Assembly (NCBI GenBank): GCA_907165135.1
Contig: OU015568.1
Location: 13,516,001 to 13,580,000 of the forward strand
Length of the DNA stretch: 64,000 nucleotides
DNA from: Oikopleura dioica
Lineage: Eukaryota > Animalia > Chordata
Direction: 5' to 3'
Shown here: piece after piece, positions 48,564 to 55,166 of the stretch
How positions within the stretch are numbered: position 1 is the first letter of the stretch
Layout: every line of letters begins with the position of its first letter
Notes under the pieces: generated by a model
The model's input: only the letters and a program-made list of their open reading frames with translations
The model's database searches: none
Told to the model about the DNA's origin: nothing
Made by a program: the position numbers and the translations under genes

Positions 48564-49207
48564 TCACTGACATTCGGGCGTTTTAATGGTGAGGGCGACA
48601 TAATGCTCGTTGTTAAGATGGCCAAGGATGAGAGCACGGCCGTGAACTTTGTCGGTCGTTCTTGGTTTGACGAAAAGAAGCTCATTCCAAGGGTCTGAGT
48701 TGACGATGAGAATTGGTCGACGGAGAACTTCAGCGCAAACTTGGATGATTACGTGGTCGGCCCACTCGCCATCTTGAGCCATGTACTGAAGCTTTCGTAA
48801 AAGAAAGGGCGAAAATTGTTACCTTGAGATACTCCTTTGGTTCTTCATCAAGGAATTCTTGATACTCCGAAAGATTCGTCTTCAGTGTTTTACATGCAAT
48901 TTGACGTAGACTTTTGTAAGTAAATTTTCGCTTTTTGACGTTTCGAAGATGCCCTAGTGTCTGATGCTGTCATAACGCGAAAACGTTCCTTGTTCTTTCC
49001 AATTTGCTCCAGAATAAATACGACCGAGTGGAAGAAGCAGTTCCCATCTGCGTGCGCATCCTTCCAGACTCGCAGTCCGTGTTTCCCCAGATTTTCAACG
49101 AACTGGTGGTGCATACTTTTATCGCCTCCTGGGCCGATTGAGAAATTCACTCCTTGGGCTTTGAGTTCCTTCGTGGCCAGCATAGTCAGCTTCTTACTTC
49201 TTTTCAT
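48564..49207 (-). CDS. OTU-domain deubiquitinase-like protein
   Basis: ADGNCFFHSV (catalytic Cys loop), LRQIAC, GEWADHVIIQ, GHLNNEHYVAL (His loop). Confidence 0.85.
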
Positions 49208-49952: not shown

Positions 49953-52342
49953 CTAGGATTGTCTCTGGGCTAAAATCCGTTGTCGAGCTTGAATGAATGC
50001 TTGAATGTCAGAATCCGCTTGCGCGTCACCAGTAAGAGATACGCCTGTAGCTTGAGAAGCGGCAGAAACAGGACGAGAGCGTTGCTCGGCAGCAAAGGAG
50101 GCAGCTGAAGAGGACCGAAGGGAAGTTCGCTCCGCTTGATCTTGGAACCATTTGTCGAATTCCTTATGCATATCAATGCGTTGTCGTTCGATCGAGTGTT
50201 TTAGATGTTCGACTTCGGGCTTGATCTTTTTCAGCTCAAGCACAGCATCTAAAATCCATTAAAATCTTATAATGACAAAAATTCACCTTGATAGCTCCGC
50301 CGATTAACCTCTATCTCTCGTCTAAGATCATTAGCTTTTTGAACCATCTCGTTGTCAAGATGCCCAGTTGCTTCTCGAACGGCAATTTGTTCCTGGACAT
50401 GCGCAAGTTCGCCTTTCAATCGATTTACAACTGCTCGATGTTCATGTATTTTAGTTCCTTTTGCCTTTCAGTGGTTAATCACGTGCACGATTCGCTACAG
50501 AAAGTTTTGGTGATTTTCTTTAACCAATTCCTTTGCTTGCAAAATCAAATCGCCGAGCTCGCTCTTCTGCGCCCTGTAGTTTTTATCTTCGACATAGACA
50601 TCAGCTCGCCAACGTTCAAAGGCCATTTTGCGGCCCTCGGACATATTGTTTGAAGTCATTTTCAGCGTGTTTGAGGAGAGATCTTCAGAAACGGCGATAG
50701 TGCTCGAATGGGCATGATCAAGAGGAGGATTTGTGTATTTTTCTGGCTCATATGGAGTTGTTTGCCTGATACAAGATTAAAAATATGATGAGCTCTTATC
50801 ACTGCACTTTAGTGCTATTTAACCTTTTCCTTGGCTTGCGTCTTTCTTTTTTCAATAATTGTGTCAGAACAGCGATTTCTGTATCTCTTTGCTCAAGGAT
50901 CTCTTTCAATCTGATAAGCTCTTCCGGTGTGATTTGAAACTGCTTGTGCTTAGAATTTACATTGGCACTTTCACCACTCTCGCGGACGATTCCTTCGGGA
51001 CGACCAGAAGAGTTGGCGAATTTTTTGAGGCGTTTGATTGAGTAGTTGATTTTTCGCATATCTCCGTCAAGATTCAGTACTGTTTCAGGATCAGGGTCTT
51101 TGAGGAAGTTCTGTATTTGGTGATCGAGGTCGTGCTTTTCGGACTCTGTCAGAAGTTCTCCGGCGTTCGGGCTTCCATCTAAAAATTGTTAATTTCCGTA
51201 ATCAAGAATGACTCACCTTGAAGTCTTAATTGCTCTTTCAGCTGATTGACCTCTCGTTTTAACCGTTGAATCTGCAGGCTTGGATCAAGCTCTTCATTCA
51301 AAACAGCTTCATTTTTAATCTTTGCAACTCGTTGGGCAAATCTACAAGTCGCAAGAGACTCTTGTATGTTCGCTGGCTCTAGTGAGACAGTGGCAATCAT
51401 AGAGGTGATAGAATTGCCGCCGAGGGAGTCTCGCAAGACAGATGTGAGCATAGAGTTTCTGTAGGGCACATGATCTCTTTTCTTCTCGCTCAAAGCCACA
51501 ATAACTTGCTCCAAGAAATGTAGGGAAAGGTTTATGTACTTCCCTTCTCTTGCAACTTGCGAGTTCCATTCCACGCTAGATTTTCCGATTCTTTCAGAAC
51601 CAGCAAGATCGACAAGATGGAGCTTTGATCGCTTGATGACTGAACTTTCAGATCTCCTTGATTCAATGTAAATTGTAAAAATGCAGTGACCCCGAGTGGA
51701 GGCCATATTCATCGGTGTTTCTGCGATCGATCTGTTTGTGTCTCCAACAAAGAGCTGATTTATTGCCTCTTCTTCCGTGGCAACCGGAAATGTTTGCAAA
51801 TTTCGTATTTTTATGCCGCTGTTTGGGTCTTCAAGAATCGTGACTTTTGGCAGATCTTCGAGTCCCTTGAAATCGTGAGCAGGGGAGAGCAAATCGTAAC
51901 CGTTTTCATTATACAACTCGAGGTAGGAAATCTGCATTTTATAATCGTTTTCGTCATCAACCATGAATCGCTCGAAGAGATAGCTCAGTGTCCTAGGAAT
52001 CAACCCTCTGTCTGCGTATTTCTCCGCTCCACCAGTGACGGTAAAAGTTTTTCCTGAGCCAGTTTGACCGTAAGCGAAGATAGTACCGTTGTATCCATTA
52101 AGCACATTGTCGACGACTGGTTTTGCTACTTTGCTAAAGATCTGATCTTGATACGCCGATTGTTCGAATATTTCGTTGAATTTGTATTTATGCAATTCTG
52201 TTTTGTTGTTCACATGTCCATCAGTATCTAGTTTCGGGACGACAATTTCCAGCTGCTTTAGTTTATCGACGAGTGAGGCCTCATGTCGAGCAGTGTCTTT
52301 TGTAGGTTTCACCCGGCAGTAAACTGAGATTGACTCCTTCAT
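49953..52342 (-). CDS. KIF6: Kinesin-9 family motor, KIF6-like
   Basis: GYNGTIFAYGQTGSGKTFTVTGGAEKYADRG, LEDLPKVTILED, GDTNRSIAETPMN, LVDLAGSER, KYINLSLHFLEQVIVALSEK; C-terminal ADSDIQAFIQARQRIL. Confidence 0.93.
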
Positions 52343-52469
52343 TCGATATTTTCTGAAAATTAAAATCAACTCGTTAACATGGCAGTTTAACGTTTAAACT
52401 AGTGAACAGTGGCGAGTGAACTGATTGCCAGGAACGTGAAACAGTATAAAATGAAGATCTACAAGCAGT

Positions 52470-54512
52470 TCAGTAATCTTTTGGAGTGAATCCTATTCGT
52501 TGAAGAACAGTTTCTTTTGGGTAGAAGTGTGCTTTTGGGTCTGTTTGTACTGAGATGAAAGTGAGGTTGGGCATTTCCATTTCGCCTAAACTTGGATCAA
52601 CTTCTGTCCGACTTTCACTCGGCTGTCTTTTTGGAAGAGACTCGTAATTTTTTGGTGTTTTCTCTTTGTTTTCAATTTCATTCAAATGGCTTTCTTCTGT
52701 GCATATTTTGCAGATCCCGTAAGATTTCTGCTGAGTTTTTGAGAAACAATCAATCGACAAGGTTCTAAATATAACTATGAGAAATAGATAAGGCGGCTCA
52801 TCTCTTACACAAGGCAGTAGTAGCAAGTCCTATGTCGAGGATACGTCGTCATCCCCGACTTAGAAATAATTCCTATCCAAGCACCCCACTTCCACAGCTG
52901 AAGTGTATTCACGAAGACATGGAGGATAGGACGCAGGGCAGCAACGTCGAAAGCGGCGTACTTTAGAAGTTGACTTGAAATAGGCCGACGACTCCAGATG
53001 TGAAAGTCAGTCTTGTGTTTCGCTTTACCAGCTTTGAAACGGAGCAAGCTTTTGTCAGAGAAAACTAAAGAAAATATATGAAAAATAATGAAAATATATT
53101 GTTACATTCATATGCTGCTTCGAGACCCAGAGGGTGTTTCTTCGTTGGGTCTTGTTGACCATTCGTCAAGGAGATCAATCGTTCTCGATATTGCAGCTCC
53201 ACGACTTAAGATTTTTATTGAACTTGAACAACTAAAACTCGCTAAAACTTACCTTGAAGGTCAATAAAACCAGCGACGCTAATCTCATAGCTTGCATACA
53301 AGTTCGCAGTATCAGAAACTCCGCCCCAAAAAAACTTGATCACTCTTGGATATTGAAGGATGTCTCTCAGCCAGCCGACTTGTGGATCTTTTTCTCTCAG
53401 TGCGTAGTCGCCAATGGCCAGAATATCAATAAGGTAGCAGTTTTTGCTTGTATAATTATTAACTGAAAATAGTAACTAGAAAAAACGGCATTTATTACTT
53501 TGAATAAGCGTAATTTTTCCGTTAGGGCCAAGCTGATCTCCCTCCAAATCAATCAACAAGTATCTGCTCATCATTAGCTCTTCACGCACACTTTCTAGTA
53601 ACTCCTTGCTATCAAGAAGTTTTACATGCAAGTTTCCGTCTTCCACTGGCGGCTTCTTGAAAAACTTTCGTATCGATTTGATGTTCTTGCTCCGCTTCGT
53701 CAGCCAAAGTCTGTAAGATACTCGAATGCAGCTTGAAACAGCATCTGCCGCACACTGTCCTTCTCCAAGGAAAATTCTAAATATGATTAGTATCAGAAGC
53801 GCGAAACTAGTCCAACCGATCAACACAGAACATCGTCGCTTGATATACTCCCCCCGTTTTCGCTGTCCGAATTCGACCCGGCTTGCGTACGAACTCGATG
53901 TATTCTTTGCAGAAGATCAGCTTGTATTGTCGGAGAATACATTCAGGGTCTTTGTTCAAAAGATCGTTTTCCTTCACATACTCCTTGAAGACCAGTATGC
54001 AATCTTTGTTTAAAGTGTCTCGCTTGTTGGCAATGTTTGGATCGAAGTCCCCTTCGACCTGCTTCCGAAATTTCGGAATAGCGTAAGTCCACATTTCGAG
54101 CACTTTCTTGCCATTAACTTCTGAGTACTCGTATTTGAAGTCGTTCATTTTCTAAAATACAAATCAATCATAAATTATGCAAACAAGACCTTACCATGCA
54201 AAAAAGATATTCTTCATCAGTCAAATCTGTAACAATGTCTGAATTAGCTTCTTCCTTCTCAGTGTCCAGATCTTCATAAAGACCGAAAGCACCCGCGTGA
54301 TAGTCTTCCATCGTCAATCTTCGCGGTCCGCCGGCTATTTTCCAGAGTTCTTCCAGTTCTTCAAGTTCTTGTCTATCTTCTTCCGATATCTCAAGGTCGT
54401 TCTTTTCAATTTTGAATTTCTCTTGATTCTCTGGACGAACTGATTCTATCCTCTCATCTTTTGCATCCTTCATTTCCAAACTAACATCCGTCATTTCAAA
54501 CCTCCTCGTCAT
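52470..54512 (-). CDS. DEDDy 3'-5' exonuclease (EXD1/Egalitarian/Mut-7-like) with N-terminal dsRBD-like and C-terminal Stc1-like Zn finger
   Basis: Exons join in frame (FCM|KMND, VDR|IFLG, LIQ|INN, DLQ|VVE, CLV|TLS); ExoI IDLEGD, ExoII WGGVSD, ExoIII WSRRPI..LLKYAAFDV. Confidence 0.8.
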
Positions 54513-54636
54513 TTTATCTGAAAGAATTAGTTTTGATTTTTCTACGAGATGTGAAGATTTATTGATCTTGAACAGAAAAAAAGTTTTTGGAATTGATCTC
54601 TAACTGATCTTGGTAAGTAGTCTAGTAGTGAAGTTT

Positions 54637-55058
54637 TCAGTAAACGAATGAAAGTGCGAAGATATCGGCGAATACATGCAGTCCTTTATTCTCCCATCTA
54701 ACTTTGATTTGACGGTCTCGCCCACTATCCCAGATGCATTGAGAGGCGGTCTAAAAAAATTACTTTTCGTTACAAAATCCGTGCCTACCGAGCAGCATTT
54801 ATCGGTCTTCTCCAAGAGAGTGATGTTGATCACGAATTTAATATCATCCAAGTTGAGCTTTTTTAGCTCATCAGCAATATTCTCCGAAATTGACTTTGAC
54901 CATTGCTCAGCATGCGATCTTGAGTAATTCTGATCTCCGATCACGGATGTTATCTGCTCCTAAACAAATCATATACCAAGAAGGAACAAAAAAAGTCTTG
55001 CCTTGATAATTTCCGTGGCTTTATCAGTTGGAAATTCTTTTTCCTCCGTACCGCCCAT
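54637..55058 (-). CDS. DYNLT: Tctex1-type dynein light chain
   Basis: IIKEQITSVIGDQNY..QW..IKFVINITLLEK..TASQCIWDSGRD..VRWENK, matching the DYNLT1/3 pattern. Confidence 0.85.
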
Positions 55059-55166
55059 TCTGATAAAGAACGATCATAAAATTTTCGTATCAGTTTTTAT
55101 TTGGATCGGTTATCAGAAAGAATCATGAAGAAAATTATACAAAGAAATTGAAGAAGGAATGTAGGT

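Follow-up and report, generated by a model that had tools for sequence, protein, structure and literature searches.

Egalitarian (Egl) binds double-stranded RNA (dsRNA) stem-loops through its ED domains and its exonuclease-homology domain (ExoHD) (PMC13186709). Egalitarian-type exonuclease domains are puzzling, as a full active site of the DEDDy type is kept while the only job known for them, mRNA transport, has no need for it. A lineage-restricted family in which the same domain is joined to other front and back ends is a natural experiment on the role of this domain. DEDDy-fold domains are also present in EXD1 and in Mut-7/Nibbler/EXD3 of animal small-RNA pathways. EXD1 has an Lsm-like N-terminal domain and an inactive site. 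In a different protein context, the zinc-finger region of Stc1 from S. pombe reportedly binds Ago1. The gene described here lies in a 64-kb window of the Oikopleura dioica genome (assembly OKI2018_I69, 64.3 Mb, 19 contigs; contig C1:13516001-13580000), on the minus strand from position 54512 to 52470 of the window. Its product contains, in this order, an acidic extension, two predicted folds of the dsRNA-binding domain (dsRBD) type, an Egl-type DEDDy domain, a C4 Stc1-like finger and a C-terminal peptide, and is tentatively read as an active exoribonuclease that acts in the 3'-5' direction on structured RNA. Its exonuclease domain is one of a known family; the architecture as a whole was found only in a larvacean-like set of sequences. 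The original prediction, made from the letters of the window alone, had called the three-domain combination unfamiliar in animals, and it was indeed seen only in two O. dioica paralogues and a few larvacean-like sequences. A literature search on Oikopleura plus Egalitarian found no paper.

Among the described systems, it is Egl of Drosophila, known as egal-1 elsewhere among invertebrates, whose exonuclease-homology domain comes closest. Both proteins possess the complete set of five DEDDy residues, and in both the exonuclease domain follows N-terminal modules of nucleic-acid type. The surroundings differ: the three LOTUS-like WH_Egal domains of Egl (ED1-3) are absent in the family of the window gene, where two dsRBD-type folds occupy their position. 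The WH_Egal model (PF23713) matched none of six family members, while the ostracod Egl P0008 scored 174 bits. Behind the exonuclease domain, the helical XAD/EHD module of Egl appears to be replaced by the C4 finger, in a region modelled at low confidence, and Egl has about 1000 residues compared with about 600 in the window protein.

Queries taken from the window were single exons; for whole domains, natural relatives without internal stops served instead, namely P0007 (575 aa, an orthologue of the window gene from a marine metatranscriptome), L007 and the paralogue types. PF01612 (DNA_pol_A_exo1, gathering cut-off 23.6 bits) matched P0007 as one domain at residues 253-449 with 53.5 bits, and the paralogue types with 48.8-52.6 bits. 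The single exons of the window gave collinear sub-threshold pieces of the same model from exon 4 (positions 48-105, E 0.0015) and exon 6 (positions 140-172), with 18.8 and 16.4 bits, and the read-through genomic match at the gene reached 24.6 bits. The DEDDy residues D275, E277, D342, Y430 and D434 (P0007 numbering) are invariant in all six homologues, which are 34-45% identical to P0007. The complete DEDDy set claimed for the window protein is there: LLIDLEG, GGVSD and YAAFD are encoded in the window and align with the catalytic positions of Egl via the homologue L007, through which exon 4 falls on IKVIHDCRNDAANLY of Egalitarian.

Judged by sequence, Drosophila Egalitarian is by a wide margin the nearest solved relative, not EXD1 or Mut-7. 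A phmmer search against solved structures gave Egalitarian with E 2.9e-8. The family profile against the PDB returned Egalitarian (5e-15), T. brucei RNase D (9e-6), EXD2 (0.09), a Mut-7 homologue (0.12) and Rrp6 (0.35), and Bombyx Exd1 was absent from these matches. Foldseek with a moderate AF2 model placed Egl first (E 5e-10), followed by Rrp6, RNase D and Nibbler; Exd1 came at rank 48, and WRN and EXD2 were also listed. Used alone against the PDB, exon 6 matched Mut-7, Egalitarian and a diDNase ancestor, and a phmmer search with exon 3 or exon 4 gave nothing useful. The earlier label of an EXD1/Egalitarian/Mut-7-like domain thus holds for the exonuclease and for Egalitarian, whereas EXD1 and Mut-7 are far weaker matches. 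The N-terminal domains of EXD1 and Mut-7/Nibbler/EXD3 differ from those of the window family, and the dead site and Lsm-like N-terminus of EXD1 are unmatched in it, with intact catalytic residues and N-terminal folds of alpha-beta3-alpha type. The second-best sequence match, T. brucei RNase D (PDB 7C42, 'CCHC-type domain-containing protein'), is a precedent for a DEDDy exonuclease with a zinc finger, but this finger is CCHC rather than C4 with FSKxQ, dsRBD-type folds are missing, and the lineage is distant.

A stretch in front of the exonuclease domain had been described as dsRBD-like, and it is present as quoted, with KDPECILRQY...ATMFCVD in exon 2 continued by IFLGEGQCAADAVSSCIR in exon 3. 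Structure prediction suggests that this segment adopts a dsRBD-type fold and that a second such fold precedes it directly, both being non-canonical. The AF2 model of the N-terminal part of the orthologue (residues 75-250; a nine-row alignment including window exons 2 and 3 as rows) reached pLDDT 81.8 and pTM 0.75 and displayed the alpha-beta-beta-beta-alpha topology twice. The first repeat consists of a helix, three strands and a long helix, and the second of two short helices followed by three strands and a long helix; a winged helix is not seen. Nearly all of the top 15 Foldseek matches were tandem-dsRBD proteins (E 7e-4 to 0.06), among them DRB4-DCL4, MLE dsRBD1-2, TARBP2, NF90, Loqs-PB, DRB4 1-153, R2D2, PKR and TRBP, and it is this preponderance together with the repeated topology that argues for two folds. 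In VIA-align, an aligner independent of Foldseek, about 30 of 50 rows were dsRBDs, mostly on the second fold (Z 4-5, root-mean-square deviation 2.4-3.7 A over 53-67 residues), and the first fold was also matched by LptE-type lipoproteins (Z 5.3-5.7).

Sequence profiles gave a different answer. The dsrm model (PF00035) had no match on window exons, paralogue exons or full-length relatives at E up to 10, and a genome-wide dsrm scan yielded 47 matches with none at the window gene or its paralogue. Pfam searches with exons 2, 3 and 7 as single queries were empty, as were those with the paralogue exons. Since both dsRBD-like fold 2 and the zinc finger are split by an intron, exon-level profiles are blind to them. 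Alignment of each fold with 20 Oikopleura dsRBDs by hhalign was not significant, at 6% probability, although a local match over a short stretch had the correct register for beta3-alpha2, and the ESM Atlas gave a score of 0.76 and no lead for the N-terminal part. When exon 2 was compared by phmmer with 1.84 billion representatives, the ORF (open reading frame) itself was the sole match, and the N-terminal module is without detectable sequence relatives beyond its own 50% cluster. The dsRBD claim is thus upheld at the level of the fold but not at that of the sequence profile.

Canonical dsRBD proteins such as TRBP, Loqs, R2D2, DRB4, Staufen and PKR have the predicted tandem alpha-beta-beta-beta-alpha arrangement in common with the window family. 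In contrast to it, they possess the dsrm profile, GPxH and KKxAK, and none of them carries a DEDDy exonuclease. In the AF2 model, the beta1-beta2 turn comprises about two residues and GPxH is absent. Helix 2 starts with GEGQCAADAV in the window protein, GEGMTVAEAV in the orthologue and GEG.TK.EA, with one Lys, in the paralogues, and KKxAK occurs in none of them. The missing KKxA lysines had been pointed out correctly, and they fit a non-canonical, possibly protein-binding type. A basic loop that is invariant, F.RKP.R, connects helix 1 with strand 1.

The zinc finger, interrupted by intron 6, reads RHRTCYYCL, V and then TLSIDCFSKTQQKSYGICKIC; the quoted motif SIDCFSKTQQKSYGICKIC is found in exon 7. 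Four outer Cys and the F, Q and K of the FSKxQxK core (F[SAT]KxQxK) are invariant in six of six homologues, and the C-x2-C-x19-C-x2-C spacing is fixed, being identical in the window protein, the orthologue and the paralogue. The middle Cys of SIDCFSK, listed in the earlier motif, is not conserved, its place being taken by Ser in the orthologue and by Glu, Asp or Asn in paralogues, and therefore is no ligand. Stc1 (PF12898) was the only one of 24,736 Pfam models to touch the finger, in four of six members, with sub-threshold scores of 11.7-15.5 bits (cut-off 24.8), always at profile positions 50-84 of 84. A PF12898 scan of the genome gave no match but, its control being equally silent, carries no information. 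In the ESM Atlas, the first match of the last 121 residues of the orthologue was a cluster partly annotated as Stc1 (score 0.91, 180 shared features). S. pombe Stc1 has CxxC ... FSKxQ ... CxxC in common with the window family but forms a tandem eight-Cys domain. The predicted Stc1-like finger is borne out as the CxxC..FSKxQ..CxxC pattern of one finger; a match to the full tandem domain above the cut-off was not obtained, and there are four Cys and not eight. The sub-threshold matches hint at a single Stc1-like finger by resemblance rather than by membership. An HNH-like C-terminal domain of the EXD2 kind was also considered for the finger and rejected on the sequence, in which 19 residues separate the two CxxC pairs, too few for such a domain, and no His/Asn motif is present.

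The gene opens with ATG at 54512 and closes with the TGA stop at 52472-52470 (Table 1). Its seven exons add up to 1788 nucleotides (nt), that is 596 stop-free codons, the introns are all GT..AG and 36-48 nt long, and the split codons encode R, I, V, F and V. The splicing is borne out by P0007, a natural spliced orthologue to which all seven exons align without gaps apart from one residue per split codon. The earlier description is amended in that exon 5 belongs to the gene and is coding, because exons 4 and 5 are contiguous in the orthologous genomic contig L005. The motifs quoted there are all in place, LLIDLEG in exon 3, GGVSDTANLY in exon 4, and KYAAFDV and TCYYCL in exon 6. The extension in exon 1 is probably disordered and holds a conserved island, W.I.GGPR.LTM.DYHA, and the end of the exon, DEEYLFCM, opens dsRBD-like fold 1. 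The acidic extension is not found in the paralogue, save for its DDEYLYCL end. The C-terminal peptide, (F/Y)(Y/N)P..TVLQ(R/K)L, is common to both paralogue types. An LC8 'TQT' motif in this peptide was considered and ruled out, as TVLQR does not fit.

The paralogue lies on contig C5, where the copy of exon 6 is 60% identical and exons 2-7 are kept in order at 31-62% identity (tblastn). Its intron positions match those of the window gene, plus one extra intron within exon 2, and its NCBI record is named 'Oidioi.mRNA.OKI2018_I69.chr2.g5309.t1'. A profile search with exon 6 found two JGI proteins of 81-82% identity, one of them on the 8.7-kb marine metagenome contig L005, which carries a syntenic orthologue with a kinesin gene downstream. 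An exon-3 alignment scan of metagenomes revealed contigs that are spliced transcripts, for example L007 with a complete 507-codon ORF of the paralogue type, whose database relatives include P0007. The transcript contig of P0007, L011, equals the genomic sequence of L005 exactly after removal of five GT..AG introns. It starts with 17 nt, TTTCGATTGTCTAACAG, joined at an acceptor just 5' of the start codon, which we take to be the known 3' end of the Oikopleura spliced leader (SL). This 17-mer followed by GT occurs at 53 sites in the O. dioica genome, compared with 0 for the control. By homology with L011, we infer that the window gene is transcribed and trans-spliced.

Between the window gene and the orthologue, exons 2-6 gave a proportion of nonsynonymous differences (pN) of 0.14 and of synonymous differences (pS) of 0.75, the latter saturated, and this pN/pS of 0.19 indicates, far beyond chance, purifying selection on the coding sequence. 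The gene is thus real, expressed in a sister lineage and under purifying selection, and a pseudogene or chance ORFs are ruled out by the selection, the transcript and the paralogue. Family matches comprise the two paralogues of this genome and a handful of larvacean-like environmental sequences. Outside this larvacean-like set, the only database matches were ostracod Egalitarian, with 31-32% identity over the exonuclease third.

Table 1. Features of the Egalitarian-type exonuclease gene, its surroundings and related loci (window positions unless a contig is named)
Feature	Position	Strand	Remarks
AG of predicted SL trans-splice acceptor	54518..54519	-	ttctttcag, then ATAAA ATG; 5 bases 5' of start codon; by homology
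Exon 1, 106 codons	54512-54195	-	Start codon, acidic N-terminal extension, start of dsRBD-like fold 1; P0007 residues 11-87, 48% identity
Exon 2	54151-53817	-	Remainder of dsRBD-like fold 1 and alpha1-beta1-beta2 of fold 2, with the F.RKP.R loop; P0007 88-198, 65% identity
Exon 3	53776-53499	-	beta3-alpha2 of dsRBD-like fold 2 (IFLGEGQCAADAVSSCIRVSYRLW), linker, Exo motif I (LLIDLEGDQLGPNGKIT; Asp at 53550-53548, Glu at 53544-53542); P0007 200-291
Exon 4	53462-53253	-	Exo motif II (KFFWGGVSDTANLY; Asp at 53313-53311); P0007 293-361; 87% identity to orthologue
Exon 5, 33 codons including split codons, 99 nt	53204-53106	-	Insert within exonuclease domain (VELQYRERL...HPLGLEAAYE); P0007 363-394; 91% identity to orthologue; also in paralogue
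Exon 6	53064-52809	-	Exo motif III (KYAAFDV; Tyr at 52960-52958, Asp at 52948-52946), helical segment, first CxxC of zinc finger (RHRTCYYCL); P0007 396-479
Exon 7	52764-52473, stop to 52470	-	Second half of finger (FSKTQQKSYGICKIC, to 52701), variable tail, C-terminal peptide (HFYPKETVLQRIGF, ~52529-52473); P0007 481-575
Zinc finger	52701..52825	-	C-x2-C-x19-C-x2-C, interrupted by intron 6
Intron 4, 48 nt	53205-53252	-	Missing in orthologous gene of L005 (5583-5600)
Tctex-1 family gene	54600-55060	-	Dynein light chain type; in L005 3803-4240
Kinesin gene	51179-52369	-	N-terminal-motor type; in L005 6515-7636
Probable OTU deubiquitinase gene	48564-49207	-	ORFs with OTU-protease-like motif
Unannotated C-terminal peptide of paralogue	L004 2654-2761 = C5 ~5129150-5129260	-	Conserved peptide
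Three WH_Egal (PF23713) repeats	C4:13206785-13208303 (L014 4642-6352)	-
Divergent genomic copy of gene family	L010 1499-2020		Metagenome contig

An active 3'-5' exoribonuclease for structured RNA is the function tentatively favoured here, as all five catalytic residues have stayed the same in both paralogue lines despite deep divergence and are accompanied by accessory modules of RNA-pathway type. In the proposed mechanism, a duplex or hairpin RNA, or else a partner protein that carries one, would be gripped by the dsRBD-type folds together with the finger. The free 3' end would next reach the DEDDy site, where two-metal-ion hydrolysis would trim it back. Small-RNA precursors would be one possible substrate among several. 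A number of points weigh against this function. Mutation of the DEDDy residues of Egl leaves its RNA binding and its known in vivo function intact (bioRxiv 10.1101/2025.08.03.668247), and because Egalitarian keeps these residues without needing them, their presence in the window family is no proof of catalysis. The dsRBD call comes from a model built on nine sequences of the orthologue and not on the window protein, the VIA-align Z values of 4-5 are middling by the tool's own scale, and sequence profiles detect no dsRBD in exons, relatives or hhalign comparisons. Neither the GPxH loop nor KKxAK is present, and the ligand of the folds may be protein instead of RNA. Finally, in the AF2 model of exonuclease, finger and tail, the latter two lie below pLDDT 50.

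The gene lies among motor-related neighbours. A Tctex-1 family gene lies 88 nt upstream on the same strand and a kinesin gene about 125 nt downstream, also on the same strand, and the order Tctex-1, Egalitarian-type gene, kinesin is kept in L005. Owing to this kept order of same-strand neighbours and to the spliced leader on the orthologue transcript, the three genes probably form a spliced-leader operon. Elsewhere in the genome, a locus on contig C4 contains three WH_Egal repeats. No exonuclease domain was found within 4.6 kb downstream of it, nor was there a PF01612 match at this place in the genome scan. The family profile used in this search overlooked L015, a different locus with PF01612, as well, which shows that its sensitivity is limited. 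The C4 locus may be an Egalitarian-like gene that lost or never had the exonuclease half.

Several other functions can be set against an active exoribonuclease for structured RNA. The role originally predicted was that of a germline trimmer of piRNA or siRNA 3' ends, or a silencing factor, with the Stc1-like finger docking on Argonaute/Piwi. It would make use of the intact DEDDy site, and the fold matches dominated by the small-RNA pathway partners R2D2, Loqs, TRBP, DRB4 and RDE-4, the sub-threshold Stc1 matches of the finger and the presence of one Piwi and several Agos in O. dioica (PMC4402516) all agree with it. Nothing, however, ties the gene to small RNAs. The known DEDDy trimmers Nibbler/Mut-7 reach only E 0.12 compared with 5e-15 for Egalitarian, the finger covers half of the Stc1 profile below threshold and is one finger instead of two, and similarity to a dsRBD fold says nothing on the pathway. 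This role is considered unlikely. A function of the WRN/EXD2 kind, as a DNA 3'-5' exonuclease in repair or replication with the finger and the N-terminal folds as DNA- or protein-binding modules, is very unlikely. The DEDDy fold is common to WRN and EXD2, both of which are among the fold matches, and EXD2 gives a sequence E of 0.09, but the two are much more distant than the RNA-directed Egalitarian, RNase D and Rrp6, and in the matched structures dsRBD-type folds are associated with RNA or protein.

The protein could instead be an Egalitarian-like RNA adaptor for mRNA localisation or microtubule-motor transport, in which the exonuclease-homology domain provides an RNA-binding surface and the dsRBD-type folds replace the LOTUS-like domains in reading stem-loops. 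Egalitarian as the nearest relative by far, the dispensability of Egl's DEDDy residues for binding stem-loop RNA, the flanking Tctex-1 and kinesin genes with their order kept in a second lineage, the presence of BicD in O. dioica, and the O. dioica gene with three WH_Egal repeats but no detectable exonuclease domain beside them speak for such an adaptor. On the other side, the window family has no WH_Egal domains (0/6), neither a BicD-binding nor an LC8 motif was recognised, a zinc finger appears to take the place of Egl's helical XAD/EHD module, and operon neighbours in Oikopleura need not share function. Moreover, five invariant catalytic residues at 34-45% identity are more easily explained by catalysis, and an adaptor of this type is considered as unlikely as the small-RNA trimmer. 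A more far-reaching and decidedly unlikely scenario is that the Egalitarian machinery of larvaceans was rebuilt, with the LOTUS-like domains placed in a separate exonuclease-less gene (C4:13.207 Mb) and the Egl-type domain fused with two folds of dsRBD type and with a Stc1-like finger before a duplication. The window gene would then belong to a motor-linked system of RNA localisation or processing not described in any animal.

The consequences differ with the function. If the protein is an active nuclease on structured RNA, it would be a novel kind of enzyme for processing RNA 3' ends, in a chordate whose genome is strongly reduced. Binding of Argonaute or Piwi by the finger would be the first animal use of a Stc1-type finger, and action together with motors would make the protein a re-engineered RNA localisation adaptor.

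Further observations concern the gene family and its surroundings. Intron 4 is missing in the orthologous gene of L005 and was thus gained or lost between close Oikopleura lineages. In the annotation of the paralogue, protein P0005 (488 aa) ends with ...ENGFEK and the conserved C-terminal peptide, EYNPNVTILQRLQF, is encoded slightly downstream, so that the last exon was probably missed. A more divergent genomic copy of the family on metagenome contig L010, from another larvacean-like organism, has dsRBD-like fold 2 in one ORF without the intron between exons 2 and 3, and GED in place of GEG. The 53 genome sites of the leader 3' end followed by GT (e.g. C1:2021289-2021307) often form close inverted or tandem pairs and are presumably SL RNA gene copies. 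Further along the window, ORFs with an OTU-protease-like motif (HADGNCFFHS ... HYVAL) probably belong to an OTU deubiquitinase gene.

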